Positions 8,120-48,833 of a stretch of 64,000 bases of DNA are shown here, one piece after another. The notes below the pieces were generated by a model. That model had not been told where the DNA came from. It did not search any database and saw nothing but the letters and a program-made list of their open reading frames with translations. The stretch's first letter is position 1, and every line of letters starts with the position of its first letter. Both the position numbers and the translations under genes were made by a program. Location: the IMG/VR virus record IMGVR_UViG_3300033233_000001, positions 62,001 through 126,000 of that record; one strand, given 5' to 3'.

Positions 8120-8830
8120 ATGCGCGACGCGCTCGTCAAGGTTGGCCTCGGCCTCGCGACCGCCGCGTACGTTCGCGACGCCGTCACCCGTCCCTACGAG
8201 ATGGCTGGCATCGCGCGGCGCCTCGCCCGCACGAGCGGCAAGCCCATGGTGAACCTCGGGGCCGGCGTGAGCGGCCGCTCGGTACGCGCGTCCCTGATGG
8301 GCCCGCGCTTCTGGGGCGACGCGAACCTCGACGACTGCGCGCCGGTGTGCTCGCCGGGCCCGAACATCGTCAGCTACTCCGACTACTACACGCTCCCCTG
8401 GTCGGACAGGTACTTCGGCGCGCTCTTCGCGTGCGATGTGCTCGAACACCTAGAGCATCCGGACGTGGCTCTCGTCGAGTGGCAGCGCGTCGCCGACTAC
8501 GTCGTCGTCTGCGTGCCGGCGCTCTGGCGGCCGGACAAGTGGCTCGCCCGCTGGTACGTCGAGCCCGACCTGACGCGTGCGTGGCCGATCTGGGCTCGCA
8601 GATCTCGCACGGCGATCTTGCCAGTGTCGGACACTCGTGCGTATAGTCCCGGCCGATGTCCGACAAGAATCCTGCCCCGTTCTCCGGCTCCGCCGGCCAT
8701 GCCGTCCCCGCCGCCCTCGCCGGCATCCCAGCCGCTTCCGCCAGCCCGCCAAGCGGACGATGGTACCGAGTCATTGCCTGTCATCTCGACGCTGGCGGTA
8801 CTTTCGGGATCCGACTCCGGGAATACCTGA
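8120..8830 (+). CDS. class I SAM-dependent methyltransferase-like protein with N-terminal hydrophobic segment
   Basis: VNLGAG motif I-like; LPWSDRYF..DVLEHLEHP. Confidence 0.65.
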   Translation: MRDALVKVGLGLATAAYVRDAVTRPYEMAGIARRLARTSGKPMVNLGAGVSGRSVRASLMGPRFWGDANLDDCAPVCSPGPNIVSYSDYYTLPWSDRYFGALFACDVLEHLEHPDVALVEWQRVADYVVVCVPALWRPDKWLARWYVEPDLTRAWPIWARRSRTAILPVSDTRAYSPGRCPTRILPRSPAPPAMPSPPPSPASQPLPPARQADDGTESLPVISTLAVLSGSDSGNT

Positions 8831-9225
8831 GCCGCGCGGTCTACGACCGGTCGACGACGTTCCGCTTCCTCGCGGCCGAGGCGAAGAAGCTCGCGGACTC
8901 GGAAGCGGTGGGCGTCATCGACGAGCAGGGTGCGCTCGTCCATCTGCTCGCTGGCAAGACCGGCCGTTTCGCGTCCGCCGACCTGAAGAAGCTCGTGATC
9001 GCCAAGCTCGCCGCTGACGGCGGCCGCGAGCCCGACGAGAAGCCGCCGGCCGAGAAGAAGAAGCGCACGAGCCGCAAGCCAAGCGTGAAGCGTACGTCGA
9101 GAAAGAAGAAGGACCCGACGGGCGCCGCCGCGGGAAAGCGCACGAGCAAGAAGCGCACGAGCCGAAGAAAGAAGCCGAAGGCGCCGGAAGCGGCTTCGTC
9201 ACGTTCGTCGATCTGGAACGCCTGA
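8656..9225 (+). CDS. hypothetical protein with basic C-terminal tail (4x KRTS[RK])
   Basis: TATAGT box 8 nt upstream of ATG; histone-H1-like tail. Confidence 0.6.
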   Translation: MSDKNPAPFSGSAGHAVPAALAGIPAASASPPSGRWYRVIACHLDAGGTFGIRLREYLSRAVYDRSTTFRFLAAEAKKLADSEAVGVIDEQGALVHLLAGKTGRFASADLKKLVIAKLAADGGREPDEKPPAEKKKRTSRKPSVKRTSRKKKDPTGAAAGKRTSKKRTSRRKKPKAPEAASSRSSIWNA

Positions 9226-9244
9226 AAACCTGAGGAGAACAAGA

Positions 9245-9538
9245 ATGAGCCAGAAGATCCGCCCGCTGAACGATCGAGTCGTCGTACGTCGCGAAAAGCC
9301 GCAGGAGAAGAGTGCCGGCGGCATTTTCATCCCCGACTCGGCGAAGGAAAAGCCGCTGGAGGTCATCGTCGTGGCCGTCGGTCCCGGCCGTTTCGTCGAA
9401 GGGCACGGGCGCGTCGAGCCCAGCGTGAAGACCGGCGACCGCGTGCTCATCGGCAAGTACACCGGCGTCGAGGCCCTGATCGACGGGGTCGAGCACCTGG
9501 TCGTCCGTGAGGACGACATCGTCGGCGTGCTCGGGTAG
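9245..9538 (+). CDS. groES: co-chaperonin GroES (Cpn10)
   Basis: IRPLNDRVVV, GGIFIPDSAKEKP, VAVGPG, VKTGDRVL..KYTG; GAGGAG RBS. Confidence 0.97.
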   Translation: MSQKIRPLNDRVVVRREKPQEKSAGGIFIPDSAKEKPLEVIVVAVGPGRFVEGHGRVEPSVKTGDRVLIGKYTGVEALIDGVEHLVVREDDIVGVLG

Positions 9539-9780
9539 ACCACGCGCATCGGCATCGGGATCCCAGAGGATCGACACGTCAGACCGATCTGACGATCAGC
9601 CTGCCGCGTCCGGGCGCCTCGTGGGCGACGCACCAGACTGGATTCCCGACCGAAGTCGGCCCACGAACCTTCGCGAGCGTGCGGAGCATCCTCGCGTTCG
9701 TGCCCGTCGAGGGGCACACGGCATCGTAGCACGCGAGCGAGCGTCTTGCCTTTCGGGTTCCAGTGCGCGAAACTCCGGCA

Positions 9781-10383
9781 ATGCCGACGCTACAACTTCC
9801 GGCGTACACGCCGGCCCTCTACCTGCCGGGCTCCTACGGCCGGTACTGGACGTACAACCCGTTCGCCCCGTACAACACGACGACCCCGATCCCAGGGGCC
9901 GGCTACAGGCCTGCGCGACTCCGTTGGGGCGAGCAGGAACTCAACTTGGACGGCGCACGGCCTGGCAAGCGCTACGTCTACGGGAACTACGCTCGTGGCG
10001 GCGGCGTGCCGCTGCTCGGACTCGGCGGCTACCTCGGGCAGACGCCGTCGACGGTTCCGGCAGTCGCTCAAGTGACGCCGGAAGAGTCGGAGTCTGCGTT
10101 TGCGAAGTTCGCGACGATCGCTCGCCGCATCTGGGGCGAGCCCGCGCCGATCGTCCACTACTCGCCGCGGTCGGCAACGGCCGGCGGCTCGACGACGTTG
10201 CAGTTCGGTCAAGGCGTGCCGGCGATCAACTACGGCGCGCTCGTCGACTACGCGAAGATCACGGCGGTCGGTACCTTCATTGGGGTCCCGGTTGCGGCCG
10301 CGCTCGGTGCATGGGTGATGCACCGTTCGATGGCCAAGAAGACGGCGACGGCGAACCGTAGTCGACGCCGGAGGCGCCGGTGA
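9781..10383 (+). CDS. membrane protein with GLG motif and Arg-rich C-terminus (putative structural)
   Basis: LLGLGGYLGQ; C-terminal TM; ANRSRRRRRR. Confidence 0.7.
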   Translation: MPTLQLPAYTPALYLPGSYGRYWTYNPFAPYNTTTPIPGAGYRPARLRWGEQELNLDGARPGKRYVYGNYARGGGVPLLGLGGYLGQTPSTVPAVAQVTPEESESAFAKFATIARRIWGEPAPIVHYSPRSATAGGSTTLQFGQGVPAINYGALVDYAKITAVGTFIGVPVAAALGAWVMHRSMAKKTATANRSRRRRRR

Positions 10384-10790
10384 GCGCAGCGACCACGCTT
10401 GCGATGCGGCCGATGACTCGACGGGCGTCGCTCGCTCGACGACGCGCACTCAACCTCGGCAACTACGACGGCGGTGACGGGCTCGGGCAGGTCACGGGCC
10501 AGGACATCGGCAACGCCGCGACGCTGATCGCGGGACTCATCTCAAATCCCGATGCGACGCTTGCTGCGCGCGGTCCGGGTATCGTCAACGCGCTCGATCG
10601 GCACATCGTCGGTCCCGCGATGCGCACGACGATCCGACGCTACATTGTTCCGTACTTCGGGCCGCCGCTGCTCGTGCTCTATGTCCTCTCTGGGCTCAGC
10701 ATGTGGGCGAGTTACTCGGTGCTCCAAGAGTTCAGGGCTGGGAAGCTCAAGGCGAACCGCGGCCGACGGCGGAAGAGGCGAAGTCGATGA
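10380..10790 (+). CDS. membrane protein with GLGQ motif and Arg-rich C-terminus (putative structural)
   Basis: GDGLGQ; TM; ANRGRRRKRRSR. Confidence 0.7.
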   Translation: MSAATTLAMRPMTRRASLARRRALNLGNYDGGDGLGQVTGQDIGNAATLIAGLISNPDATLAARGPGIVNALDRHIVGPAMRTTIRRYIVPYFGPPLLVLYVLSGLSMWASYSVLQEFRAGKLKANRGRRRKRRSR

Positions 10791-11398
10791 GGCAGATCTC
10801 GAAGGACGGCGGCATCTTCGGTGGCCGCATGGGCGAGCGCGAGTGGAACGCGGGCCGCGCGCTGGAGCGCCGCGCCTCGATGGGCGAGGGCCGCTTCACG
10901 TCCGGCTCGGTCGACACCGAAGACCTCGCGCCGAAGACCTGGATTCTCTGGAAGCACGCAAGCAAGGGCTTGGAGATCTGCACTGTCGAGTGCGAGATTC
11001 ACCGCCAGCCGCGCGCGTCCGACCCGGGCGAAGCGGTCGCGATGCTCGTTGGGCAGTGCCCGGTATGCTATCGCGAGCACAAGAACCCGGACGGATCTCC
11101 GCAGGTCAACTACTTTCACGTGCGTGAAGACAACAAGGGAATGAGCCTTGATTGGGTCTCGTACGGCAAGCTGCCGCCGAGTCACCACCTCGCGGTCAAC
11201 TGGAAATGGCATGCTGAGCACAAGCTCGGCCGAGCCCCGATGTCGGACGACAAGATCGCGATGGTGTCGAGTCCAGAGCGCTGGATTTGCGACTACTGTC
11301 ATTCGTGGTGCGTGAAGGTTACCGATTCGATCGCCATCACGGATACGACCGGCGCGACGGTCCTGGTCATGGATATGAAGGCAGCGGCGCCGAAGTGA
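10787..11398 (+). CDS. Zn-binding hypothetical protein
   Basis: CPVC and CDYC pairs; ATGA overlap. Confidence 0.65.
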   Translation: MRQISKDGGIFGGRMGEREWNAGRALERRASMGEGRFTSGSVDTEDLAPKTWILWKHASKGLEICTVECEIHRQPRASDPGEAVAMLVGQCPVCYREHKNPDGSPQVNYFHVREDNKGMSLDWVSYGKLPPSHHLAVNWKWHAEHKLGRAPMSDDKIAMVSSPERWICDYCHSWCVKVTDSIAITDTTGATVLVMDMKAAAPK

Positions 11399-11823
11399 GC
11401 TATCGGGCTCCACTTCCGCCAGTCCGGCCGGGGCCAATCCCGCAGGTGCATCCGAGCCAGCAGATACCTCCGACGGAGCGGTTCTATCCGCTCTCGCTCG
11501 CACAGACGCCGTCGACACTCGCACAGCCTGCGAGCGGCTGGGACACGCGCACGCTGATGCTGCTTCTCGCGGCTGCTGCTGTCGGCATCTGGCTCTGGCA
11601 GCGGTTCTTCGCCAAGAAGAAGAAGGTCGCGCGCAACGAGGCTCTGTACCTCACGACCGAGGGGCCGCTGCGAGGCCTCGATCGGGCACGTAAGCGCATG
11701 GCCACGAGCGCCAAGCTCCTGATGTCTGAGGGGCACGAGGGCGCCGCGAAAGACCTCGAAGAGATCGGCGCGATGCTCGCGGAGTTCACGCGTCGGACGC
11801 GAGAGCAGACGCTGGAGGACTGA
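11395..11823 (+). CDS. single-TM hypothetical protein (MSYRAP...)
   Basis: GTGA overlap; TM followed by KKKK. Confidence 0.65.
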   Translation: MSYRAPLPPVRPGPIPQVHPSQQIPPTERFYPLSLAQTPSTLAQPASGWDTRTLMLLLAAAAVGIWLWQRFFAKKKKVARNEALYLTTEGPLRGLDRARKRMATSAKLLMSEGHEGAAKDLEEIGAMLAEFTRRTREQTLED

Positions 11824-11825
11824 CG

Positions 11826-12146
11826 ATGGACATCGCGGCGCTCGACCAGGCGATGATGGAGGCGGCCGGCGCCGCCGAAGACCCTAGCGACCCTGAGCGG
11901 TCCGCTCGCGTCGCAGCAGCCGAGGCGCTAGCGATTGAGTACGTGAGGCAGTGGTTTTCGGATCTGAAATGGGCCGGACGACAGCTTGAGTCGGATCCGG
12001 TCGTGACCTGCGTCGATGTTGGCCCCAGCGATGTCATCGTCGCGATCGACGCGAAGCGGCTTCCGGATGGGTTCGAGAGCCGCGCCTCCACGCAGCACTT
12101 CGTCATATGCGTGCGCGGCGACAAGATTCTCTGGCGTCACTCCTAG
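11826..12146 (+). CDS. hypothetical protein
   Basis: GGAGG RBS. Confidence 0.65.
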   Translation: MDIAALDQAMMEAAGAAEDPSDPERSARVAAAEALAIEYVRQWFSDLKWAGRQLESDPVVTCVDVGPSDVIVAIDAKRLPDGFESRASTQHFVICVRGDKILWRHS

Positions 12147-12149
12147 CCG

Positions 12150-12779
12150 ATGCCGCGTCTTCCTCCGGTCTGGAAGCCGCACCAGGCGGTCGTTCTCGGC
12201 ATCGACGTCGCGGCCACAAGCGGCTGGGCCATCTGGAAGCCCGGCACGCTGCTGGTCGGCACCGTGCACGACCGAATCGGTGCCGAGGCCGTTCGGTGCA
12301 GTGTCGTCGAGAGCGCGATCGAAGAAGCGCAGGCGTGCGGGCTTGGGCTCATCGTGGTCGCCGAGAAGTGGACCGCCGGTAGCGCGGTACGCGACGGCCG
12401 CATGAACGCCTCGACGCTGCTCGGTCTCGGCGGCGCGTGGCGTGACTGGCAGCGCGTGCTCGTCGAGTACAGGGTGCCTCGAAAGCGCATCCTGCGCGTA
12501 AACGTGAAGACGTGGCAGGGCGCGATGCTCAAGGGCCTCGGCGCGCGCCGGTCGGAGCAGCTGAAAGCGGCCGCGAGGCTCGTCGTGTCTTCGCGGTTCC
12601 CGGCGCTCGGCAAGGTCGATCTCACGTCCGACGCGTACGACGCTGGCTGCATCGCGCTCTGGGCAAGCCAGAGCGGCGAGGTCGGCGCGGCGCTCGCGGC
12701 GAGTCGCGCATGGCCCGGAAGGATTCGGATCCGAAATCCGCTGTCAGAAGATCTTGCTCCTGTCGGACAGTTACGATAG
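12150..12779 (+). CDS. RuvC-like Holliday junction resolvase (phage type)
   Basis: VLGIDVAATSGWAI, central E, W-x-x-x-M/L helix, C-terminal DAYDA. Confidence 0.75.
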   Translation: MPRLPPVWKPHQAVVLGIDVAATSGWAIWKPGTLLVGTVHDRIGAEAVRCSVVESAIEEAQACGLGLIVVAEKWTAGSAVRDGRMNASTLLGLGGAWRDWQRVLVEYRVPRKRILRVNVKTWQGAMLKGLGARRSEQLKAAARLVVSSRFPALGKVDLTSDAYDAGCIALWASQSGEVGAALAASRAWPGRIRIRNPLSEDLAPVGQLR

Positions 12780-12791
12780 GGTCCGATCCCG

Positions 12792-15606: not shown

Positions 15607-15812
15607 GCGATCTCGACGAAAAGGCCACCGACGTCCGTGTTACGTTTCGGACGCACAGGTCGCGGGTCGAGAAGCTGCACCGCGTAGCCGAGGCGCACGA
15701 CTTGAAGGTCGGCATTCGGTACAGCATCGGCGCTGCGATCAACTACGTTGTCGACCAACATCGCGACGAGCGGCCGAAGAAGAAAGCCACACGAAAGGCG
15801 AAGAAGTCATGA
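15603..15812 (+). CDS. small basic protein, possibly ribbon-helix-helix DNA binder
   Basis: VRVTFR strand followed by two helices. Confidence 0.5.
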   Translation: MSDLDEKATDVRVTFRTHRSRVEKLHRVAEAHDLKVGIRYSIGAAINYVVDQHRDERPKKKATRKAKKS

Positions 15813-16393: not shown

Positions 16394-16396
16394 CCA

Positions 16397-22648: not shown

Positions 22649-23275
22649 ATGATGGACGTGTTCCGTGGTCGTGTGCAAGTAGGTGGCGAGTGGATCGCTT
22701 ACGGGAAATCGCCTGAATGTCATCCGGGTGATATTCCGCATCAGAAGGACCGGCAGACGCTTCATGCGTACGAGCAGGTCTTCTCTGGCTGGTCGCCGAG
22801 AGCGGTGCTGGAGGTTGGCGTCTGCGACGGAGGTAGTCTGCTGATCTGGCGAGCACTATGGCCGGCCGCGCGCGTCGTGGGCGTTGACTGTCGAGTGCCG
22901 CCAGACCGCGCTATGGCGGCGTTTGTAGGTCTGCACGTGGAGTTTATCCACCGTGAGATGCCGGCACAGCTGGACCTGCCTGCTGCTGGGTTCGATCTGG
23001 TGATTGACGACGGCGCGCACGGCTATACGTCGGTAGCGTCGAACTTCGAGATCTGCTGGCCACTGGTCGCACCTGGCGGTCGGTATGTCGTCGAAGACTG
23101 GCATTTGCCCGAGTTCGATCCTGGTAGGATCGGTGGTCTGCTCGCAGAGACAGTGATCGGCGCGGACGATGGCGCGCACTTCTGCGACGGCGACTTTCCA
23201 CCGAACTCGGCGCTGCGGGTGGAGGTCTATCGCCGAATGATCGTGGTCTACAAGCGGGGCGGCGACGAAGACTAG
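22649..23275 (+). CDS. class I SAM-dependent methyltransferase
   Basis: VLEVGVCDGGSL, FDLVIDDGAH, PGGRYVVED. Confidence 0.85.
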   Translation: MMDVFRGRVQVGGEWIAYGKSPECHPGDIPHQKDRQTLHAYEQVFSGWSPRAVLEVGVCDGGSLLIWRALWPAARVVGVDCRVPPDRAMAAFVGLHVEFIHREMPAQLDLPAAGFDLVIDDGAHGYTSVASNFEICWPLVAPGGRYVVEDWHLPEFDPGRIGGLLAETVIGADDGAHFCDGDFPPNSALRVEVYRRMIVVYKRGGDED

Positions 23276-24246
23276 GTCGCCGGCAGCCGCGGTGGCTCCA
23301 TGATCTTCCCGGTCATGAACCCGAGACCTGCGCCGAGTCCGGCTGCCAGCCACTTGTTGCGGACGAGATTGCCGCTCAGGCCGGCGGCGGCGCCAAGCGT
23401 CGTGAGCAAGATCGTCGCCAGCTGCGACTGCGTGATCGTGATCCCGGCCATGCCGCTGATGGCACGCGTGCTTCCTACGATCTGAGTCGAGCCGTCCGGA
23501 CCGACGATCAGGGTACGCGTGCCGAGCGAGCCGCCGGAGATGGTTAGCGTGCACGGCTGTCCAGTTCGCTGGGCGTTTCCGAGCGCCAGACCGATGCCGG
23601 TCGAGTAGTCGACGTTGCTGGCGATGACCTGGCCGCCACAGGTAACCGTGCCAGTGCCGAGGCTGGTCGACCGCGCCATGAGGCTGGCGCGGTCGACAGA
23701 AGCCGGCAGGACGCCGCTGGGGGTCGTCGCAGCCGGTACGGGCGTAGCTGGCGCCTGGGAGGGCGCGCGCCCGAGCAGCCGGTCGAGCCAGGTACAGCCG
23801 AGGCCGTCGCCGGTGTCGCCCATCGCAGCGGCGCGTATGCGCTCACGCGTCGGCGGCGCGATGCCGCCGCCCAGCCACTTCGGCGACGGACGGCCGATGC
23901 TGCGTGCGTACGCGTCGGCCGCTGCACGCGTTGCCGGCCAGCTGTCGACGACGCAGCCGCCCCACGACGTGTTCGTCGCCGGGTCGTAACCGAAGCTCCC
24001 GCCGAGGCCCATGATGCCGCGGTAGGGATCGAGCCCGTACCTCATGATGTCCGGCTCGCCCGTCACCCACGAGCCGTGCTCGATGTACGGCGCGATCGGA
24101 AGGCCTGCCTCCTGAAGCCGCTGGAAGTTCGGCGGCGCGGTCACGCCAGGCGGGAGTGCCGCGAAACTCAGCTGCCCAGGGACTCCTTTCGCTTGGCCGA
24201 GGCCAGCGAGCGGACGGCGACGTGGACGCGGTGCTCGGTACGACAT
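23272..24246 (-). CDS. multi-GLG-motif protein with C-terminal TM segments (putative structural)
   Basis: MSYRAP start, LAGLGQ, IMGLGG, GDGLGC; TAGGAT 7 nt upstream of ATG. Confidence 0.7.
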   Translation of the reverse strand: MSYRAPRPRRRPLAGLGQAKGVPGQLSFAALPPGVTAPPNFQRLQEAGLPIAPYIEHGSWVTGEPDIMRYGLDPYRGIMGLGGSFGYDPATNTSWGGCVVDSWPATRAAADAYARSIGRPSPKWLGGGIAPPTRERIRAAAMGDTGDGLGCTWLDRLLGRAPSQAPATPVPAATTPSGVLPASVDRASLMARSTSLGTGTVTCGGQVIASNVDYSTGIGLALGNAQRTGQPCTLTISGGSLGTRTLIVGPDGSTQIVGSTRAISGMAGITITQSQLATILLTTLGAAAGLSGNLVRNKWLAAGLGAGLGFMTGKIMEPPRLPAT

Positions 24247-24295: not shown

Positions 24296-25078
24296 ATGAC
24301 GAACGCAGCTGGGCCCGAAGAGATCGAGGATGACGACGGCGAGGACGAGCATCTCGTCGAGATGCTCCGTAAGCCGCACAAGAAACTGTCGCAGGTGCTG
24401 CTGAAGTACCGCGAGTCGTTCTGGACGATGGGGCTGTCGAACCTGCGGACGCAGGTGCTCGGGCGCGGCCGATTCGGCGTCGCCTACAAGATCGACATCG
24501 GCGGCGCACCGTCGGTCTTGAAGGTAACGCGCGACCCGTACGAGACGATCAGCAGCTTCCTGCTCCAGAACAAGAAGACTTCTCGCGTCGTGCCGATCTT
24601 CAAGGTCTGGCAGTGTGCCAAGAGCGTGACGCGTTCGAAGGACGGTCTGCTCTGGTGCGTCGTGCACCGGCAGCTACTGAACCCGGTAAACAAGCGCGAC
24701 GCGAAAATCTTGGAGTTCCTCTACTCGCTCTACTGCGACGACGACGTCGATCTCTGGCTCCCGAAGCTCGGGCCGAGTGGACGCGCGATGCGGGCGAAGT
24801 GGAAGGACTTCATCGACGACCAGTACCAGGGCCAGCAGCGTGATCGCGTCCTAACCGTCCTGAACGACGTCTCGGTCGGCGCCGCCGAGCTACGCAAGCT
24901 CGGGTACGTCTGGGCCGACTGCCACTCGGATAACATGATGAGAGACGAGAGCGGCGTGCTGCGCATCTCTGATGTTGGATGGGGCATTCCTCAGCGCGAT
25001 GGCAGGACGGTGCCACCCGACTTCACAGTCGAGGCCGCGCGCGAATATGTCAGGGCGCTAGAGGGCGCGGCCAGCTAG
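24296..25078 (+). CDS. protein kinase-like fold enzyme
   Basis: LGRGRFGVAY, VLK, DCHSDN (catalytic loop), ISDVG (DFG-equivalent). Confidence 0.85.
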   Translation: MTNAAGPEEIEDDDGEDEHLVEMLRKPHKKLSQVLLKYRESFWTMGLSNLRTQVLGRGRFGVAYKIDIGGAPSVLKVTRDPYETISSFLLQNKKTSRVVPIFKVWQCAKSVTRSKDGLLWCVVHRQLLNPVNKRDAKILEFLYSLYCDDDVDLWLPKLGPSGRAMRAKWKDFIDDQYQGQQRDRVLTVLNDVSVGAAELRKLGYVWADCHSDNMMRDESGVLRISDVGWGIPQRDGRTVPPDFTVEAAREYVRALEGAAS

Positions 25079-25841: not shown

Positions 25842-28800
25842 TCAGATCAGCGCCAGCTGGTTGTCTTCGCTGGCCGGCAGAGCAGGAGAGGTCGGTGCGC
25901 CCGTGCTCTGCGGCACGAAGCGGAGGTATGGCGACGGCGTGACCGGTTCGCCGCTGATATCGTCTCCGTGCGTGTACGTGCTGATCCAGCACTCATCGCG
26001 TGCGCGCGTCACCGCCACGTAGAAGCATCGAAGTTCTTCGCGCTCGGTCCCCCATGGGACGGGCCAGTTGGCCGCGACCATGCCGGGAATGAACGTGACT
26101 GGGTACTCAAGGCCTTTGCTGTTGCACCCGTCGAATCCGTTCTGGAGGAAGCGGCCATGGCCCGGAACCTCGATGCACATCGCATCACCGACGTAACGCT
26201 CGATCTTTTCGATTTGATCGTGATGAAATGCTAGGTCTTCTGACAGCCCAAACTTTCGCGCAACGTGCCTAGAGACGTAACCACGGCTCACGGCATTTGC
26301 ACGGTCGAACTTGGTTGTGGCCGTCCGTGGCAACGCGCGCGCAAGTGTCTTACTCATTGGAATCAGCGTGTTGGTTTCTGGACTGACCGCGGCGTTTGAT
26401 TGGCGATTCTTCCGCGCAGAGACGAACCCGATTCGAGACGCAAAGACAGCTGCTTGTTGACCGTATGCGTCCACGCGCCACGCATCATGCAGCCGGCCGG
26501 CCGTTTTCATCCGCACCTTGAAGCGAGACGTGATGATTCCATGTCGCAGTAGCAGCTGCTGCACTCCGAAGCCGATGTCGCGGTACTTGGTCGTAAAGGC
26601 AATGTGGTCCATGCGACCATCGTCCTTGATATTGACCGTTGCATCCTCGAACAGGCCTCGCAAGAACGCGACCTGTGTCTGTCGTGACGTTTGCCAGATC
26701 GTCTCTGGGATGGCTTTCTTGTGCGGGCTTAGCCCACCAACGGAGCGAAGCCAGTCAGCGATCATTACAGAACACACTTCGGCGTTGTACCATCCTGTTC
26801 GTTTGCCTGGCACGTACCACTTTGTTGCGTGCACTCTTGGACCAAAGATGCGACAACACAAGTCGCCGAACCGATCGATGACATCGAGGTCAGCCTTTGT
26901 GGTGCGAAATCCACTACGAAAAACCGTACCGTCGGCTACCATGAGACCCAGGAACTCGGCCACTTCTTCCGTTAGATGTTTTGGAATCGTGTGACGAACG
27001 GTGCGGATGTCGAGGCCGCCTGGTGCTAGCGGCATGCGCGGGGCGCGGCCGCGTTGTCTTCGCTCTGTTCCTAGTTTTAGACGTAGAAAGTCGCCCACTC
27101 GCAACGTGGCGGCCGGCACTGGTACGTACGATGAGCCGTCCCAGGACATCAGGCCGTGGTCGCTGGTGACAGAGATCTCGTATCCGTAACGCGTCGTCAT
27201 GCGAAGCATCTTGCACTTTGCGTAACGCACCGGTGCTTGGTACTGTCGCATTCCAGCCGTGGTCGCGACGGTTCCGGTGTCATGCGCTAGGGAGATAGGT
27301 GTCGTGCCGCGGTCTGTGTCAACGAGCGTCTCCGGGCTAACGCACTTATGAATGGTAATCACCGACACGGCGTTACGGCTCTGCGCGGCCGCGCGCTGCT
27401 GTGCGCGCATCTCGTCGACGATCGTGAGCATGACCTCGACGGTGTCGAAACCCTCGGCGAACGACCGGATGCGCGCCATCGTGTTGGTGAAGCTGCTCGA
27501 TTCGTCTCCCTCTGCCTGCTCTCGCCTGTGCCACTGCACGTACTGCGTGCGGTCGATGATGCGTTCGAGCAGTTGTGCCGGCGTCGCGCCCCGTAGCATC
27601 GAGCCGCGCCACTCCTTGATCTGCTCGACGAACTGGAACGCCGCGTCTCTCGCGCGTCCGTGGTAAGCATCGCAGCGCTCGATGCGCTCGGCCCAGTCGC
27701 CGTCGCTCTTGTCGACGCGCGCGACCGAGTCGACGAACGCTCTGCCGAGGTAGCGACTCGGATTCGTGAGTGCTTGGTAGAGGTCGTCTTCTTCCGCCTT
27801 ACCGAGGATGAGTCGAAAGTACGCGAGCATGGCCTTCGCCTCCTTGAGGCCGAAGAAGCTCGTGCCGGAGACCATGCGGAGCGGGACCTTCTGCCGGAAG
27901 AACTCTAGCTCGATATCCTTCGACTGCGCGTTGAGGCGAATGAGAATGGCCATGTCTCGCCACTCACGGCCGCGGCGTTTCTGCTCGGCGCAGAGGTTGG
28001 CGATCGCAGCGGCCTCGACCGCCGAAGTCGAGGACGTAAGTCTGCCGACGAAGCCTCGGATCTCACGCGTCGGTTTGAGATGCATCGGGAGCTTGTCGTT
28101 CGGGGCCATAGCGTCGAGTACGCGGTTGCCGCAGTCGAGGATGTCGCTGCCGGAGCGGAAGTTCTCTTCCATGTAGACGGCGCCGCAGCCCCAGCGTTCG
28201 GCAAACGATAGTAGATGTTCCGGGCGAGCCTGTCTGAACGAATAGAGCGCCTGCCCGGCGTCGCCGACCACTACGAGGTTGCGATGCCCAGAGGCTAGTA
28301 GCTCGATCAGCTGCCACTGTGCTTCGCACAAGTCCTGCGCCTCATCGACGATGATGTAGTCGTAACGCTGCTGCCAGATCTGCCGGATGTCCTCGTCGTG
28401 CTCGACGATGCGCGCTGCTTCCCAAAGGATGTCGTCGAAGGTCGCGAACGGGAAGCCGTTGGCGCCCTCGACGCGGCCGGCGCGCCGTGCGTTATCGGCA
28501 GCGTAGAAGAGGCGGATCAGATCTTCGATGCCGTGCCTCGGGTCACGCTTCTTCTCGATGATGATGTCAGCCGCCGCGAGCAGGTCGGTGTGGACCTTGC
28601 TGAGATCGAAGTCGCCGCTCAGCGGCGAGAACGGCAGCGGCGGGACGGGCAGATAGTCGTTCCGGACCTTCGAGGAGAACGCCTTCACGAGGTCGACGTC
28701 GGGCTTCTGGATGCCGAGGCTCGCTGCGGCCTCGCGAATCGCCTTGTTCCACAGCGCCTCGACGTTGCCATAGTTGGCTGACCTGTTCGACTCCTCGCTT

Positions 28801-29129
28801 CGGTACACGAGGAGCGCTAGGCTGTGGAGCGTGCGGGCTGGGTCGTCTTCGAGACCGACGCCAGGAAGCCGCTTCTTGAGCTTCTTGTTCAGGTCTTCGG
28901 CGGCCGAGACGTTGAAGGCGACGATGCAGATGCGCGAGAGTCGCGCGCCGTGGTACTCGACGAGGTGAGCGACGCGCTCAACCATGCAGGTCGTCTTACC
29001 GCTCCCAGCCACGCTGCCTGCTAGGAGCGGGCCGTCCTTGTGCTGGACGATCGCGCGTTGGGCGGGCGTGAGCAGGTCGACGAGCTTCGGCGGCTCGACC
29101 TTCGGCGCCTTCTTCTTCCTCGCGGCCAA
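25842..29129 (-). CDS. uvrD: UvrD/PcrA/Rep SF1 helicase containing an intein
   Basis: AGSGKT, VDEAQD, VGDAGQALYSFR, ENFRS, TIHK/SKGLEY, YVAVTRA; likely TTG start at 29129. Confidence 0.92.
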   Translation of the reverse strand: MAARKKKAPKVEPPKLVDLLTPAQRAIVQHKDGPLLAGSVAGSGKTTCMVERVAHLVEYHGARLSRICIVAFNVSAAEDLNKKLKKRLPGVGLEDDPARTLHSLALLVYRSEESNRSANYGNVEALWNKAIREAAASLGIQKPDVDLVKAFSSKVRNDYLPVPPLPFSPLSGDFDLSKVHTDLLAAADIIIEKKRDPRHGIEDLIRLFYAADNARRAGRVEGANGFPFATFDDILWEAARIVEHDEDIRQIWQQRYDYIIVDEAQDLCEAQWQLIELLASGHRNLVVVGDAGQALYSFRQARPEHLLSFAERWGCGAVYMEENFRSGSDILDCGNRVLDAMAPNDKLPMHLKPTREIRGFVGRLTSSTSAVEAAAIANLCAEQKRRGREWRDMAILIRLNAQSKDIELEFFRQKVPLRMVSGTSFFGLKEAKAMLAYFRLILGKAEEDDLYQALTNPSRYLGRAFVDSVARVDKSDGDWAERIERCDAYHGRARDAAFQFVEQIKEWRGSMLRGATPAQLLERIIDRTQYVQWHRREQAEGDESSSFTNTMARIRSFAEGFDTVEVMLTIVDEMRAQQRAAAQSRNAVSVITIHKCVSPETLVDTDRGTTPISLAHDTGTVATTAGMRQYQAPVRYAKCKMLRMTTRYGYEISVTSDHGLMSWDGSSYVPVPAATLRVGDFLRLKLGTERRQRGRAPRMPLAPGGLDIRTVRHTIPKHLTEEVAEFLGLMVADGTVFRSGFRTTKADLDVIDRFGDLCCRIFGPRVHATKWYVPGKRTGWYNAEVCSVMIADWLRSVGGLSPHKKAIPETIWQTSRQTQVAFLRGLFEDATVNIKDDGRMDHIAFTTKYRDIGFGVQQLLLRHGIITSRFKVRMKTAGRLHDAWRVDAYGQQAAVFASRIGFVSARKNRQSNAAVSPETNTLIPMSKTLARALPRTATTKFDRANAVSRGYVSRHVARKFGLSEDLAFHHDQIEKIERYVGDAMCIEVPGHGRFLQNGFDGCNSKGLEYPVTFIPGMVAANWPVPWGTEREELRCFYVAVTRARDECWISTYTHGDDISGEPVTPSPYLRFVPQSTGAPTSPALPASEDNQLALI
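26121..27344 (-). mobile_element. intein (408 aa) with LAGLIDADG homing endonuclease in UvrD
   Basis: TIHK|CVSPET... TSDHGL ... FLGLMVADG, FLRGLFED ... FDGCN|SKGLE; lower GC. Confidence 0.92.
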
Positions 29130-44089: not shown

Positions 44090-44106
44090 CGGTGTTCTCC
44101 TTAGGG

Positions 44107-44508
44107 TTAGCTCCACGTCACGCGGACTCGCCACAGGTCCCAAGTGTCCATGCCATCCTTCTCGGCCCAGCACTCGTACACGGCGTGCAGACCGTCGATC
44201 TCGTTGATCACTTCGGCGGTGGTTTCGCTTATCGGATGGTTGTCGCCGTCAAGATCGCCGTCAAGATCGATGTGATCTTGGCCGCGTGAGATCGCCTCCT
44301 CGATCTTGGCGAAGAACCACGGGGCGATGATCTTCTCACGTTCGCAGCGTAGCACGTTTGCCCGCCGCGCCTCGGCTTGCCGCCGTAGATGCTGCACCTC
44401 TTCTTCGCGTCGCCGAAGCTCTTCGCGACTCGGCTTCGCATTTCGCCTGGCGGTTCCAGACGCGATTGCAGCTTTGACTCGGGGATCGATCGGCATCACA
44501 CGCTCCAC
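44107..44508 (-). CDS. hypothetical protein
   Basis: contiguous run. Confidence 0.55.
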   Translation of the reverse strand: MERVMPIDPRVKAAIASGTARRNAKPSREELRRREEEVQHLRRQAEARRANVLRCEREKIIAPWFFAKIEEAISRGQDHIDLDGDLDGDNHPISETTAEVINEIDGLHAVYECWAEKDGMDTWDLWRVRVTWS

Positions 44509-44786
44509 TCGTCGAGCTTGCGCATCTCGTCGCGACTGAAGAAGATCGCGGTGCCGGCGATGACTTCCGGCCGGCGCTTGAGCACGGTGAGCGCGGAGGC
44601 GGCCTCGTTGATCGGCTGCTCCTTGAGCTTGCCTTCCTCGTCGACCATGAGCGCGCTGCCGTCGGTGAACGTGAAGAACTCGATGTAGCCGCCGCCGATC
44701 ATCGCACGCAGGCCTTCGAGGGAGCAGTCTCCGGCGGTAAGCGTGAACACGTCGGTCGGGCCGTTGGTTGGGATCTTGGTTGCCAT
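44496..44786 (-). CDS. DUF3846-like protein
   Basis: LEGLRAMIGGGYIE..MVDEEGKLK..PINEAAS..IAG. Confidence 0.75.
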   Translation of the reverse strand: MATKIPTNGPTDVFTLTAGDCSLEGLRAMIGGGYIEFFTFTDGSALMVDEEGKLKEQPINEAASALTVLKRRPEVIAGTAIFFSRDEMRKLDEWSV

Positions 44787-44789
44787 CGG

Positions 44790-45149
44790 CTACTCCTTCT
44801 CTTCGACCCGCCGCAGCAGCGTCTTCGTCTCGTCGGCGATCTCGATCGTCCTCGTCAGCGCCGAGCGCATCGCATCGTGCTCGGAAACGACGAGTTTGAC
44901 CTCCTCGAACACGTCGCGCGGCTCTGCCTTGCCGACGACGTAGGCGATCGCGGCGAACGCCCCGAGACGTTCCCTGAGGCCCGTGAACGCCTTGTCGAGT
45001 CGCTCAACGTTGCGCGTCAGGGTGGAGACGCTCTCGCTCATGTCGGGTCCAGAGATGCCGCGCTCCGCGTACACCTTGATGGTTTCGGCGCTCGACATGA
45101 GCGCCTGCATCGCCTGCCGAGCGTCGTCGTGCCAGTCGGGAACGCTCAC
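44790..45149 (-). CDS. hypothetical protein
   Basis: GTGA overlap; helical. Confidence 0.55.
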   Translation of the reverse strand: MSVPDWHDDARQAMQALMSSAETIKVYAERGISGPDMSESVSTLTRNVERLDKAFTGLRERLGAFAAIAYVVGKAEPRDVFEEVKLVVSEHDAMRSALTRTIEIADETKTLLRRVEEKE

Positions 45150-45475
45150 GGCGACACCTTCGTAGTCCCGCCACATCGAGTGCACGTCTCCCAACCGCGT
45201 CCCCATCCCACGAAGATGCAGCCAGTGACGCACGCGGGGCACTCGATCATGGACGGCGGCACCGTCGGAACCGGCACCGTCGGAACCGGCCCGACGCGTC
45301 GGAGGATCTCGTCGACAGCAGCGGTTTCGATCAGCGTCAGGCGCTGGCCCTCGTAGCCGTGACGCTTCGTCTCGTCGACGACCTCCTGCGCGAAGCGCTG
45401 CGCCCACTCCCGGGTGTCGGGTGTCACGGTCTGGACCTCCTCTGCGAACGCTGGACCCTGTCCCGGTTTGCTCAC
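45146..45475 (-). CDS. hypothetical protein with CxxC..CxxCxG finger
   Basis: CPACVTG...CTRCGGT. Confidence 0.6.
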   Translation of the reverse strand: MSKPGQGPAFAEEVQTVTPDTREWAQRFAQEVVDETKRHGYEGQRLTLIETAAVDEILRRVGPVPTVPVPTVPPSMIECPACVTGCIFVGWGRGWETCTRCGGTTKVSP

Positions 45476-45833
45476 GGCTTCCGCGCCTTCCGCCGCTTCT
45501 TGTTCGCGGCCCTCCGCTTTCGGTCGTTCACGGCGCTCCTCGCGTGCGCCGCCTCCGCGACCTTGCGTAGAGCACGTACCTCGGCGACGGCGGCGTTCGC
45601 TACGGCATTTCCGGCTGACCGCGATATCGAGGTCACGCGGTCAAGCGCTTCGCGGGCCTCGTCGCGCTCGCGCTCGACCTCGCGCAGCGCACGCACCTCG
45701 GCACAGAGGACCGCGATGTCGGCTTTCGCGTCCATGTGGTCCACGAGCAGCCGCTTCATTCCGAGTTCGCCGTTGTCGTAGGCAACCGGCCTGCGCCAAC
45801 GCGTCTCGGTTGCATCGAGATTGCAGCGCACGG

Positions 45834-46184
45834 CTACTTCTTGCCCTTCTTCGGGCTCTTCGGCTGCGCAGCGGCCTCCGACGGCAGCATGACCTTCGTG
45901 ACGACCTTGGCCTTCTCGGTCGCCTTGGCCTGCGCTTCCTTGTCCGCGGCCGCCGCCAGGCGTTCGCGCTGGGCCTCTCCCGGCCGGCCATCGAGCAGCT
46001 TGAGCTTCTCGGAGGCGCTCAGCGCCGCCCAGGCGGCCTGCCGCTCGGTTGCCTCGCGGCGGAGACGGTCCTTGCGCTCGGCGAGCGACTCCTGCTTGAC
46101 GCTCGTGCTGAGCCAGGGGCGCGGCGAGTTCTGTTTGCGCTCGCGGGAGCCTTCGTAGGGGTTCGGACGATGGGGACGGGGCAT
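45834..46184 (-). CDS. basic hypothetical protein
   Basis: GAGGAGG RBS. Confidence 0.65.
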   Translation of the reverse strand: MPRPHRPNPYEGSRERKQNSPRPWLSTSVKQESLAERKDRLRREATERQAAWAALSASEKLKLLDGRPGEAQRERLAAAADKEAQAKATEKAKVVTKVMLPSEAAAQPKSPKKGKK

Positions 46185-46448
46185 GGGACCTCCTCGCGAC
46201 CTGCCGGGCCGCGGTTCTCGGGTTCGTGGTTGGTGGTTCTAGGTCATGTCGACCCGAAGCGAACGAGCAGGCGCTGGCGTTCAATAGACACTGCCGGCGT
46301 CTCACGCATCGCGGTAGCACCACCGAAGTGATTGACCGCGCCGCCGCAGCTACGTGCTGCTCACTCGCTTCGAGTCGACATGTTCACTGCGAGACGGTAG
46401 CACCGCGTGAAGCTGAGTCAACAACAAAACGCAGCACGGTCGGACAGG

Positions 46449-46850
46449 CTATTTCGTCGGCTCACGAATGAGATCGAAGGAGCCGCCGCTGCGCTCGGTC
46501 CACGCGTACAACCAGAACTTCGCGAGGTCCGTCGGGCTGCCGTCGAAGGCTGCTTCGCAGTGCCCGAGCGTCTTGAGCGCGCTGGGGACGGTGATGTCGG
46601 CGTTGCGCATGGCCCAGAAATCCTTGGTGTCCGGATCCCACTCGTCGGGATGGCACAAGGCCTCGATGCTGAAGATGTCTTTCTTGAGGAAGCCGTGGCT
46701 CTTCATGACGGGCGTCAGAGCGCGCAGGAGGTGGCTCCACTTCACCGCGACCTCTCGCTTGCCTCGCTTCCCCTTCATCGGCGCGCGCACGATGATCATC
46801 GGGCCCGGCGAGTACACGTGGAGATACGCGAACAGTGGCTTGTCGGTCAT
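46449..46850 (-). CDS. hypothetical protein
   Basis: TGATG overlap. Confidence 0.6.
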   Translation of the reverse strand: MTDKPLFAYLHVYSPGPMIIVRAPMKGKRGKREVAVKWSHLLRALTPVMKSHGFLKKDIFSIEALCHPDEWDPDTKDFWAMRNADITVPSALKTLGHCEAAFDGSPTDLAKFWLYAWTERSGGSFDLIREPTK

Positions 46851-47191
46851 CAGTCGAGCTTCGGGTGTCGGACGTTCGTCGAGAAAATGCCGGGCCTGCA
46901 TACGCAAGCGCGGGCGCCGTGGTCATGGAAGCCATGAGCAAGCGTTTCGAGTGCACGCAGGGCAGCGGTCCGTCCATGAAGATCTTTCGCTGGCACGCCG
47001 ACGACGTCGACACGCGGAGTGCGCACGCTCTGCCGGCCGTAGTAGATCACGATCTGTCTCGGAGGCACGGTCGCACGAAGCTCGACGCCAGCTTGGCGGC
47101 AGAGGCTAGCGAGGGACATGCGTCGACCATCGACGCACGGCGGCTCCGCGCGAAAAAGCGGTCGTTCGATCAGTGGACGAAGCGGGATCAT
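46850..47191 (-). CDS. hypothetical protein
   Basis: ATGA overlap. Confidence 0.55.
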   Translation of the reverse strand: MIPLRPLIERPLFRAEPPCVDGRRMSLASLCRQAGVELRATVPPRQIVIYYGRQSVRTPRVDVVGVPAKDLHGRTAALRALETLAHGFHDHGARACVCRPGIFSTNVRHPKLD

Positions 47192-47889
47192 GGCCGCAGA
47201 GCTTTCCTGGCGCGTTCGACGAATACGCCGGCTTGTTGCTTCAACAGACTCGCGGTACGGAGATTCCCACCGGCAAGATCTGCGAAGGCAGCGGACCGAA
47301 GCACCCGATCCAGCAGTCCGATGTCTTGTTGCGTCCCTTGGATCACGACGTAGTGCGGTCTGGTGTTCTTGAGCAGCACCAGGAGCTTCGCGATGTCTCT
47401 CTGGTCTTTGAGACCGTGCTTCGATTCGCCGCGGTCTGCAAAGGCATCGAGCTTCAGGAGTAGTAGATGCTCCAGGCAGGCCACCCGCTTGCCCTGAATG
47501 TCGACTGCTCCCATGGCGAGATCTTCGTAGGCGATGCGCAGCCGATTCTTGCGCTCGACGTAGATGTCGACGTCAATGCCGCCGATGATCACCTGACTCT
47601 TCGATAGGGCGGCGTTGGTGGTTGCGTCATGCTCGTTGCGGATGGCGCTCCACGACGGCAGGTCGACGTACATATCAGCGTCGTGAGTGAATTCGACGGT
47701 GAAAATCGGTCCGGCAGCTGCTGCATGCAGAAAAACGGCAACGCCGCCGATGAGGATCGTTCCCTCCGGGTGTTCCTGCGTCAGTGTCTCGACCGCGGTC
47801 CAGACCTTCGCCCATGCCCGATCGGCAGCGGTTCGGCTCGTGCGCTTGCCTGGTCGGCGGCTCGTCCGCTTGCTGCCGCGCTTGGCCAC
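47188..47889 (-). CDS. nucleotidyltransferase (pol-beta superfamily, AbiEii-like) with N-terminal KRTS tail
   Basis: ILIGGVAV..H, T.DAD, VDI, LLLKL..R..K..D. Confidence 0.7.
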   Translation of the reverse strand: MAKRGSKRTSRRPGKRTSRTAADRAWAKVWTAVETLTQEHPEGTILIGGVAVFLHAAAAGPIFTVEFTHDADMYVDLPSWSAIRNEHDATTNAALSKSQVIIGGIDVDIYVERKNRLRIAYEDLAMGAVDIQGKRVACLEHLLLLKLDAFADRGESKHGLKDQRDIAKLLVLLKNTRPHYVVIQGTQQDIGLLDRVLRSAAFADLAGGNLRTASLLKQQAGVFVERARKALRP

Positions 47890-47894
47890 GGCGC

Positions 47895-48833
47895 CTAGTT
47901 GTGACGCCAGTACGTCAAGCCGTTCTGCGTGTCGTTCAGATTGCCGTCGTACGACGACAGGAAGTGCCCGGCGCCATCAGCGCCCACGGCCTCTTCGGCT
48001 GCGGCCTTGACGTCGATACCAGCGATCTTGATCGCCTGCTTCGCGGCGTCTTCCTTGCCGTAGATGTTTTCGAGGTACTCCATCGGGTCGCTCAGTTCGG
48101 CCTTGGTCTGTGCCTCTGCGACGTTCTCGATGTCCTCGTCACTCGGGTCTGACGTCTCGACCTCGTAGTCGTAGTCGTACTTCTCGGCCCCGGGGTGCGC
48201 CGCGTTCTGCTCATCGACCCAGGCGCCGCCGGCTTCTTCCGCATCGCCCTCGTCATCGTACACGCCGAGCGTCTTCTCGTTGTTGTCCGGGTCGGTGGTC
48301 TTCACCGTGTACTTCGGACTGATGCCGTGGCCCTCGGCCTCGTGCCAGAAGTTCTTCGTGTCGCGCTCCGCGTCTTCGCGCAGACGCTCCTCATTCGAAT
48401 TCAGCACGTCACTCCAGAGGTCACGACTGAGGCGCTCCTTGTCGATGTGCGACTCGATGAAGCTGGGCTCGAAGTTCTCCGGCTCGTTCTCCAGCTGCTC
48501 GGTGACGTACGCGAGGGCAAGCTCCTCGGCCGCGACGTCGTTCTCCACGACGTACCACTCCTTGCCGGTCTTGCCGCCTGCGATCTCGACGAGATAGACC
48601 TTGCTGTTGCCGACCCCGGTCGGCGCGCTCGACTCCTTGATCTTCAGATCATCGGCGGGAATGTCGAGCGCGCGCGACATCTCGACGAGCACTTGGTCCT
48701 CGTCGTCGAAGTCGATGGTCGTTCGTGCCGGTGCGGCGGCGATCGGCGGACGAGCCGCGACGGGCTTGCGCGACGTCCTCTTCTTCGACGTGCGCTTCTT
48801 GGGCTTCTTGGAACGACGTTTCGCTGTGGCCAT
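47895..48833 (-). CDS. highly acidic protein with basic N-terminal KRTS tail
   Basis: GGAGG RBS; MATAKRRSKKPKKRTSKKRTSRK then D/E-rich body ending GAGHFLSSYDG. Confidence 0.75.
   Translation of the reverse strand: MATAKRRSKKPKKRTSKKRTSRKPVAARPPIAAAPARTTIDFDDEDQVLVEMSRALDIPADDLKIKESSAPTGVGNSKVYLVEIAGGKTGKEWYVVENDVAAEELALAYVTEQLENEPENFEPSFIESHIDKERLSRDLWSDVLNSNEERLREDAERDTKNFWHEAEGHGISPKYTVKTTDPDNNEKTLGVYDDEGDAEEAGGAWVDEQNAAHPGAEKYDYDYEVETSDPSDEDIENVAEAQTKAELSDPMEYLENIYGKEDAAKQAIKIAGIDVKAAAEEAVGADGAGHFLSSYDGNLNDTQNGLTYWRHN

Follow-up and report, generated by a model that had tools for sequence, protein, structure and literature searches.

KRTSR, a short basic terminal motif shared by at least 23 unrelated proteins of a huge uncultivated bacteriophage, as a candidate protein address label

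Introduction

Few portable targeting peptides are known in phage biology, where they are of value, and their main example is the capsid targeting sequence (CTS) of phage T4, which has been made into a tool for packaging foreign proteins. The T4 CTS comprises about ten residues, is present as a single copy, is not polybasic and is removed by the prohead protease. It is found on the internal proteins IPI-III and Alt and is portable to foreign cargo (PMC3012670). In the present study we have analyzed a window of 64,000 nucleotides, corresponding to bases 62,001-126,000 of the 297,749-bp IMG/VR virus contig IMGVR_UViG_3300033233_000001, and have focused on a short basic peptide, KRTSR, which is repeated in terminal tails of three proteins encoded there (8656-9225, 47188-47889, and 47895-48833) and of others elsewhere on the contig. 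Positions are those of the window, except where they are marked as genome positions, which refer to the whole contig.

KRTSR is like the T4 CTS in being a short conserved peptide shared within a large phage by accessory or counter-defence proteins that are not otherwise related. The T4 internal proteins, which are diverse and defence-related, have only the CTS in common, and the list of KRTSR cargo resembles them. Unlike the CTS, which is N-terminal only, KRTSR is found at the N- or C-terminus, is multi-copy and is strongly basic. The T4-type arrangement of an exclusively N-terminal peptide upstream of a prohead-protease cleavage site is not seen for KRTSR tags, for which neither a protease nor a cleavage consensus was identified. 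Encapsulin cargo-loading peptides are also short, are found at either terminus and load unrelated cargo into a shell of the HK97 fold; unlike KRTSR they are hydrophobic, Gly-rich and usually single-copy, and no shell gene was identified here.

A short basic core repeated two to four times in disordered tails, with variable spacers, is an arrangement that KRTSR has in common with the AT-hook (RGRP core) and SPKK motifs of HMGA and of histone H1 and H2B tails. These motifs bind the minor groove multivalently, and eukaryotic examples are switched off by Ser/Thr phosphorylation. They belong, however, to eukaryotic chromatin proteins, and the KRTSR core contains neither GRP nor S/T-P-K/R-K/R. The form K-R-x-S-[RK], with an invariant Ser and a variable position -1, also resembles the [RK][RK]xS consensus of basophilic Ser/Thr kinases (PKA/PKC/AGC type), which was derived from eukaryotic kinases, and a kinase-like gene and a phosphatase gene are present in the genome; unlike the kinases of that consensus, the phage kinase is only remotely similar to eukaryotic protein kinases and is T7 gp0.7-like by language-model features. 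Classical nuclear localization signals (NLS) are likewise basic, portable and multi-copy labels on diverse cargo, whereas the present virus is a bacterial one, with Shine-Dalgarno motifs, toxin-antitoxin (TA) genes and a tRNA cluster. Chimalliviruses, with their PicA import pathway, are phages that sort proteins between compartments. They have no conserved linear import signal (PMC11087766), and neither chimallin nor PicA was recognized in this genome.

The nearest known kinds are cargo-targeting peptides, and KRTSR differs from them in every descriptive feature. It is a different kind of label, which is basic, multi-copy, placed at either end and carried by about 5% of the proteome of a huge phage. 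The term "KRTSR" was not found in any phage paper searched, and the motif looks like a protein address label that has not yet been described in phages.

Enrichment, position and consensus of the motif

KRTSR is a clade-specific and order-specific short linear motif (SLiM), which is located in disordered terminal tails and serves as a portable tag on at least 23 unrelated proteins. The first-pass annotation of the window had reported eight KRTS[RK] copies in three proteins, and all of them were recovered at their places. The protein of 8656-9225 (+) contains KRTSR at residues 136, 145, and 166 and KRTSK at residue 161 (DNA starts at 9061, 9088, 9151, and 9136, respectively); that of 47188-47889 (-) contains KRGSK at residue 3 and KRTSR at residues 7 and 15; and that of 47895-48833 (-) contains KRRSK at residue 5, KRTSK at residue 13, and KRTSR at residue 18.

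For genome-wide counts, genes were called with a codon-usage model trained on the contig, which gave 490 genes covering 90% of the sequence, and the predicted proteome of 490 proteins and 89,255 amino acids was used. The count of KRTS against expectation, which had been proposed together with the initial observation, revealed a strong enrichment (37 versus about 1). The 37 copies are distributed among 23 proteins, while 0.99 copies are expected from composition, and shuffling within proteins gave a mean of 0.98 and a maximum of 4. Even when shuffling was confined to blocks of 20 amino acids, the mean was 1.28 and the maximum 5, and these local shuffles rule out a compositional artefact. The remaining 23 orderings of K, R, T, and S occur 0-8 times each, the most frequent being overlaps of tandem motifs. 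When only the 64 strongly basic termini were considered, KRTS was found 27 times versus 0.2 in shuffles and KRTSR 20 times versus 0.0; basic composition alone is therefore an insufficient explanation.

Most copies (30/37) lie within 40 residues of a terminus, including 12 within 40 residues of the C-terminus, and seven lie beyond 40 residues from both ends. Three of these seven "internal" copies belong to an 817-amino acid RecT-like fusion (genome 221837-224290 (-); PHROG 2319) and represent the N-terminal tag of a domain that is encoded separately in a relative. The 817-amino acid open reading frame (ORF) seems to join a RecT-like domain to this tagged C-terminal domain, which starts its own gene in the relative. 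The motif is often repeated with a period of seven residues, as KRTSR-[KR]-P, with two to four copies per tail; Pro at position +3 is present in some copies only.

The consensus is K-R-[T>A,G,V,S,N]-S-[R>K]. Position counts across clade sequences, which are qualitative because overlapping windows are included, gave Ser at position 0 in 120/125 cases, never with substitution by Thr, and Arg at position -2 in 120 of about 129. At position -3 the ratio of Lys to Arg was 110:10, though Arg is twice as common as Lys in this genome. Position +1 is Arg or Lys, and variability is greatest at position -1 (T, followed by A, G, V, S, N). The pattern of basophilic kinase substrates, i.e., basic residues at -3/-2 and a Ser acceptor, is present in the motif. 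With its invariant Ser, a fixed Arg at -2 and a preference for Lys over Arg of 110:10 at -3, this order-specific conservation in the sequences points to a specific reader and not to generic electrostatic DNA binding.

At the DNA level, arginine is encoded in the motif copies by all six of its codons, threonine by four, and serine by codons of both boxes (AGC, AGT, TCG, TCA, and TCT). Since codons vary freely, selection has acted on the peptide and not on a DNA repeat, and this heterogeneity, with both serine boxes and all six arginine codons in use, rules out a DNA-level repeat or regulatory element. A mild excess was observed for the motif Ser, which is AGC or AGT in 26/37 copies (70%) versus 37% genome-wide. 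An ORF of 740 amino acids with 17 RRxSR strings (genome 218134-220356) was excluded, since a better gene model retains only its 3' 422 amino acids and the longer call is probably out of frame or over-extended.

Proteins carrying the tag

The first-pass annotation had spoken of a tag on three unrelated proteins. The lack of relationship was confirmed by all-versus-all BLASTP, while the number has to be raised to 23, and a portable tag on unrelated proteins is supported. Similarity among tagged proteins was found only between two HicB-like proteins and in an N-terminus common to two membrane proteins, and paralogy of the carriers is ruled out by this comparison. Most carriers are encoded outside the window, at genome 194-250 kb. 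They include a BrnT RNase toxin tagged at the N-terminus (Pfam 1.4e-27), a Fic/Doc protein tagged at the C-terminus (Pfam 3.3e-13), two UPF0150/HicB-like proteins tagged at the N-terminus, three tagged MenT/AbiEii-like nucleotidyltransferase-like proteins, the RecT-like fusion mentioned above, and a 987-amino acid protein to which no function was assigned (genome 197891-200854). The others are several small proteins without known function and proteins with a cytoplasmic-looking tail behind a C-terminal hydrophobic helix. In each of three complete TA pairs (BrnT and a helix-turn-helix partner, HicB-like and HicA, and Doc and a MazE-type partner) the tag is on one partner and not on the other, which is what a single label per complex would predict.

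The protein of 8656-9225 (+) has 189 amino acids and consists of a disordered segment (residues 1-30), a small alpha/beta domain (about 33-122) and a disordered basic tail (123-189). In its AlphaFold2 model the predicted local distance difference test score (pLDDT) is 80-93 at residues 33-122 and below 50 in the tail. No Pfam, PHROG or PDB match was obtained for this protein. No clear fold match was obtained for its domain, the Z of 4.7-4.8 for the best hits, T4 Dmd and AcrIF9, being below the noise level for the search. At its extreme C-terminal tip, past the last KRTSR, there is a second short motif, SSIWN[AP] (9205-9222), which is kept in closer homologues and is comparable to the tip of SSB tails.

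The 233-amino acid protein of 47188-47889 (-), which begins with a tag of 20 residues, had been labeled a nucleotidyltransferase, and this is correct at the fold level, since Foldseek on the AlphaFold2 model places it among MenT/AbiEii-like proteins. The model, built with 60 homologues, has a pLDDT of 95.8, and tag residues 1-20 form a coil with the lowest pLDDT in it. The top Foldseek match was the MenT1 toxin 8an4 of M. tuberculosis (E 2e-4, probability 1.0, template modeling (TM) score 0.43-0.55), and further matches were the JHP933 nucleotidyltransferase and other nucleotidyltransferases. No Pfam match was found for the protein itself, the AbiEii model (PF08843) included, and AbiEii matches were obtained for 3/60 of its homologues, weakly, at 5e-4 or weaker. 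No antitoxin domain was recognized in its neighbors.

The protein of 47895-48833 (-) has 312 amino acids, with an N-terminal tag of 25 residues and an acidic body with a net charge of -42. It is a member of a widespread family found only in phages. No known family or fold was found for it, and the fold search matched uncharacterized viral clusters only.

Conservation of the tag in relatives

Absence of the motif from homologues in related genomes had been named as an argument against a tag, and the opposite was observed for the protein of 8656-9225. It has 11 homologues with 46-71% identity, and all 11 keep three to four motif copies in the C-terminal tail. Nearly all of these copies are exact KRTSR, along with one KLTSR and a few KRGSR or KRASK, while the spacers between them vary in length and sequence. 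The invariant columns of the alignment include K136-R140, K145/T147-R149, and K166/R167/S169/R170, and no spacer column is among them; motif columns are as invariant as those of the globular-domain core. Both features by which a SLiM is recognized are present, i.e., a core conserved while spacers diverge and a location in a predicted disordered region (the tail with pLDDT below 50), and this combination is the signature of a SLiM under purifying selection.

The acidic protein has at least 180 homologues. Its closest relatives (52-59% identity) have two to four N-terminal KR[TVAG]S[KR] copies, while more than 100 members of 227-240 amino acids are untagged and begin directly at the conserved domain. 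A maximum-likelihood tree computed from bodies alone groups the 10 tagged members with multiple copies in a single clade, with support of 99 in the Shimodaira-Hasegawa-like approximate likelihood ratio test (SH-aLRT); this was a quick tree, from whose 120 rows four without the anchor motif were omitted. For the nucleotidyltransferase, 233 representative proteins match at E<=1e-3. Among the matches listed, none of 150 N-termini has a KRTSR tag, and alignments begin at about residue 20 of the query.

Tags are also kept on other genes of related contigs. In 21 kb of one such contig (47% identity of the anchor protein), an N-terminal tag of KRTSR type, RRTSRRTS at a C-terminus, and tails with Arg runs are retained by orthologues, while two further orthologues have lost or altered their tags. 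A relative of 106.8 kb, with a median identity of about 64%, keeps tags on two orthologues, and orthologues of five further proteins keep the tag on relative contigs. When IMG/VR was searched with the back-translated tandem motif, more contigs with tags and 65-67% G+C were found, on which two to three copies stand at the end or start of a 1,236-amino acid protein, pentapeptide-repeat proteins, and small proteins. A search of 185,579 species genomes with the tandem-tag DNA pattern gave 74 loci, nearly all of which are out-of-frame or unrelated tandem repeats; five are in one metagenome-assembled genome (MAG) of Polyangiaceae, and genuine tags were found on two contigs of a Phycisphaeraceae MAG only. 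As judged from these sequence comparisons, tag extensions have been appended to genes whose homologues elsewhere lack them, some of these genes being evidently acquired, and have then been maintained.

Kinase-like protein and phosphatase

A candidate writer for the motif serine is the 260-amino acid protein of 24296-25078 (+). Its initial description as a kinase is supported in the sense of a kinase-like protein by phmmer against PDB, by features and structure in the ESM Atlas, and by reading of the sequence. In the phmmer search its C-terminal half, which includes a DFG-like "ISDVG", aligned with GRK1 and other AGC kinases (E 0.002) over their catalytic loop and DFG region. ESM Atlas features gave 0.95 with a viral cluster, 44% of whose members have the T7 kinase 0.7 domain, and the Atlas structure gave TM scores of 0.5-0.66 to viral and bacterial clusters, with 51% of the members of the cluster at 0.66 carrying Pkinase. 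By eye, a Gly-rich loop GRGRFG followed by VLKV can be seen, as can candidates for the ATP-binding Lys, the catalytic Asp/Asn loop, and the DFG-like Asp. The protein had no match in Pfam, the Pkinase model included, or in PHROG. An orthologue with 76% identity is encoded on the 106.8-kb relative contig that also bears tagged orthologues.

A dual-specificity phosphatase (DSPc) with a Cys-x5-Arg loop is encoded at genome 13906-14421 (-) (Pfam 6e-9, above the Pfam cut-off) and is, by its sequence, a possible eraser for the kinase-like protein. A complex prediction for the kinase with ATP/Mg and tail residues 128-175 gave a score of 0.00, which is evidence neither way.

Possible function of the motif

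We infer that KRTSR may act as a portable address label, through which one common reader would bring the tagged proteins to one place. The most likely destination would be the phage's own nucleic acid, i.e., replicating or packaging DNA, and thence the DNA-filled head, so that accessory proteins would travel with the genome as internal or ejected proteins. Candidate cargo would be TA-type enzymes, MenT-like nucleotidyltransferases, the acidic core protein, and, in relatives, pentapeptide-repeat proteins, and binding could be multivalent in the manner of AT-hook and SPKK. More speculatively, the invariant Ser, with basic residues at -3/-2/+1, might be a switch for release or engagement, which the kinase-like protein of 24296-25078 would write and the phage dual-specificity phosphatase would erase. 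Taken as a whole, addressing to phage DNA or the DNA-filled head with a possible phospho-switch is the best explanation that we can offer, and we hold it tentatively.

Several observations weigh against it. No capsid, portal, terminase or tail-sheath gene was recognized on the 298-kb contig when Pfam and PHROGs were searched with about 60 large proteins singly and with a batch of 149 proteins, and when six-frame searches were made for Terminase_6N/6C, TerL_ATPase, Phage_capsid, and Phage_sheath_1; the sole virion hint was a 20-bit match of a 366-amino acid membrane-class protein (genome 237002-238102) to a head-maturation-protease PHROG. KRTSR is further found at the end of tails that belong to proteins with a membrane-like hydrophobic helix, and such tails fit a reader at the cytoplasmic face better than the interior of a capsid, unless these are ejection proteins. 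The strict order of residues, with Lys over Arg at -3 and Ser never replaced by Thr, suggests from the sequences that the reader is a protein or enzyme rather than DNA. It is physically unlikely that folded proteins ride on DNA through the portal of a tailed phage, and any loading into virions would therefore have to take place at the procapsid stage. The analogy with the T4 CTS is functional only, because the CTS is N-terminal only, is not basic and is cleaved. For the switch, neither an FHA nor another phospho-reader domain was found in the genome.

Among the alternatives, we rank phospho-regulation second, and RNA or ribosome targeting, degron or processing, and compartment import third. 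In phospho-regulation, tags would be multisite substrates of a basophilic Ser kinase, either the 24296-25078 protein or a host kinase, and phosphorylation would set activity or timing with no addressing. This is compatible with addressing to nucleic acid or the head, and as a stand-alone function it is the main alternative, if an unlikely one. The invariant Ser, the greatest variability at -1, the classic basophilic form K-R-x-S-[RK], and multiple copies as in multisite substrates are all in its favor, as are the presence of both a kinase-like gene and a DSPc phosphatase in the genome and the fact that the closest PDB matches, though weak (E 0.002), are AGC-family basophilic kinases. It does not readily explain, however, why the sites are in tails appended to about 23 unrelated proteins, such as membrane proteins, toxins and antitoxins, instead of being internal; Thr at -1 and Lys at -3 are more conserved than kinase motifs usually need, and a phospho-reader domain is missing from the genome as described above. 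Quite unlikely, in our estimation, is an arginine-rich-motif style of function, in which tags would raise the affinity for RNA (tRNA, rRNA or mRNA) or ribosomes and guide translation-targeting enzymes to their substrates. Bacterial homologues of many carriers (MenT-like, BrnT RNase, Doc, and HicB paired with the mRNA interferase HicA) act on RNA or translation, MenT-like proteins being tRNA nucleotidyltransferases (PMC10435456), and the genome is RNA-rich, with RtcB, Ro60/TROVE, RNA ligases, and about 30 tRNAs. But bacterial homologues of the same enzymes function without such tails, and tags on antitoxins, the acidic core protein, the 987-amino acid protein, the RecT-like fusion, pentapeptide-repeat proteins and membrane-protein tails would be left unexplained.

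Still less likely is that tags are terminal degrons or protease sites, recognized by ClpXP/Lon-type proteases or a phage protease, which set protein lifetime or are clipped in maturation. Location at the extreme terminus of either end is degron-like, and basic N- and C-terminal classes of ClpX recognition signals reportedly exist; a single tagged partner per TA pair would govern the stability of the complex, and the junction Asn in 14/39 basic C-terminal tails versus 2.3% could mark a processing site. Two to four copies would nevertheless be needless, and in the protein of 8656-9225 motif copies are also 20-50 residues from the end, while the true C-terminal tip is a different conserved motif. 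We give little credence to tags as import or retention signals for a nucleus-like or membrane-bound factory built by the phage, recognized by a dedicated receptor in an NLS-like manner, even though they are portable, terminal, multi-copy, basic, lineage-specific and appended to horizontally acquired genes, one label per complex fits, and about 15 co-conserved proteins with Gly-rich helices and Arg runs might form or line a membrane structure. Against this, a gene for a chimallin-like or other shell protein was not recognized in the genome, and in the sole known phage nucleus surface patches are used, with no conserved signal sequence (PMC11087766). An extended form of this explanation, a linear NLS-like protein-sorting code in a huge high-GC phage clade, would have two parts, KRTSR on soluble cargo and some 15 co-conserved proteins that begin with MSY..GLGQ, contain a Gly-zipper helix and end in an Asn and Arg run. 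Through a dedicated receptor, proteins would be imported into, or retained in, a compartment or membrane-lined factory built by the phage, and the phage kinase and phosphatase would gate the code. We give this joint proposal equally little credence. An artefact could have arisen from chance low complexity at high GC, from ORFs called in the wrong frame, or from translation of a DNA repeat or of a regulatory element at gene boundaries; GC-rich genomes do give many Arg/Ser-rich wrong-frame ORFs, RR.SR is commoner in non-coding frames here, and motif Ser codons are skewed to AGC/AGT (70% versus 37%). KRTS, however, requires AAG, which is rare out of frame; the enrichment survives local shuffles and codons are heterogeneous; the motif is kept in orthologues at 46-70% protein identity despite spacer divergence; and carriers include well-supported genes (BrnT, Doc, and the nucleotidyltransferase with its model pLDDT of 95.8). 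The artefact explanation is effectively refuted.

Whatever its destination, the tag defines a concrete set of proteins that are treated alike by the phage, and it has been maintained across a whole uncultivated clade and added to horizontally acquired TA genes. It provides a five-residue handle for finding the reader, be it DNA, a receptor, a kinase or a protease, and a simple sequence marker for recognizing this phage clade in metagenomes. Should the tag load proteins into virions or a compartment, it would represent a novel sorting system with possible use in engineering. As a phospho-switch, it would belong to a phage-encoded network of kinase, phosphatase and substrates acting on the phage's own proteins, and if the NLS-like sorting code were true, a bacterial virus would have a system that the known phage nucleus lacks.

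Other terminal signals

About 15 proteins end in [TS]-[AP]-N-[RK]-x-RRRR, which a short spacer separates from a preceding Gly-rich hydrophobic helix. Outside the window, this class is found at genome 207-247 kb and 288655-291357 (-), and the pattern is also present in relatives; some of the tails include KRTSR. The topology of these proteins is puzzling, because they have no signal peptide and their N-terminal domains have up to 860 amino acids. When these C-termini were compared with the tripartite signals of the sortase/exosortase type (signature motif, transmembrane helix, and basic cluster at the extreme C-terminus), a helix and an Arg cluster were observed in the about 15 proteins, while the sequence before the helix showed no conserved signature, and the tail has greater length and a conserved Asn.

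Within the window, this second signal class is represented by a 200-amino acid protein (9781-10383 (+)), in which a C-terminal hydrophobic helix is followed by TATANRSRRRRRR, and by a 136-amino acid protein (10380-10790 (+)), in which it is followed by KANRGRRRKRRSR, with a KRRSR-variant end. A further member of the class is a 93-amino acid protein (7774-8055 (-)), which starts with MSY, contains a Gly-rich hydrophobic helix and has an Asn and Arg run, RRNRGRRRRHRPN, at its C-terminus.

Proteins starting with MSY, often as MSYR...G[LM]G[Q], number 21 versus about 3 expected, e.g., at 7774-8055 (-), 23272-24246 (-) and genome 227-247 kb. Many of them also bear the helix and Arg-run C-terminus, and the MSY start may be an N-terminal recognition or processing motif. 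At the junctions, Asn directly precedes the basic run in 14/39 basic C-terminal tails (background 2.3%), and N-terminal tags often finish with ...RRN[GP].

Source genome and its other genes

The contig is linear with 65% G+C and a CheckV completeness of about 90%, and was obtained from a single sediment metagenome, the phage being uncultivated. Because Shine-Dalgarno-like motifs precede genes and because there are a tRNA cluster, inteins in UvrD and RtcB, a transposase, HNH endonucleases, and TA modules, the contig is a huge bacteriophage. Megablast of 4 kb against phages found no cultured relatives, nor did tblastn of a 440-amino acid protein (genome 6375-7697) or of the tagged 987-amino acid protein, and the sole link to cultured phages was the RecT-like domain, for which identities of about 27% were found in jumbo phages (Tunturi_5 and RsoM2USA, among others). 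The two Phycisphaeraceae contigs with genuine tags (JBEIUO010000030 and JBEIUO010000178) are short contigs of the clade included in a 3.6-Mb MAG of Planctomycetota, the remainder of which has no tags; this bin is a weak hint of the host.

Other genes on the contig include those for NAMPT, an IS605-type transposase, HNH endonucleases, and several TA modules, and a Ro60/TROVE protein is encoded at genome 174275-175999 (-). The gene of 8656-9225 is followed just downstream by one for GroES (9245-9538). Genes for a UvrD-type helicase (25842-29129 (-)) and the RtcB RNA ligase (51906-54569 (+)) are each split by an intein with a LAGLIDADG domain, and RtcB in one relative contig is intein-free, with 510 amino acids. 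An adenylosuccinate-synthetase-like gene (55581-56942 (+)) matches a PHROG annotated as a PurZ-type enzyme (2e-83), a match that makes one ask whether the DNA contains 2-aminoadenine. The tag-rich block at genome 194-250 kb is closely preceded by 28 clustered tRNA genes (genome 181.4-187.9 kb), of which five are for tRNA-Arg and two for tRNA-Lys. A further tRNA gene detected by ARAGORN (58861-58935 (+)) has the anticodon CUA, which would read TAG, and TAG is the stop codon of 107/490 predicted genes.

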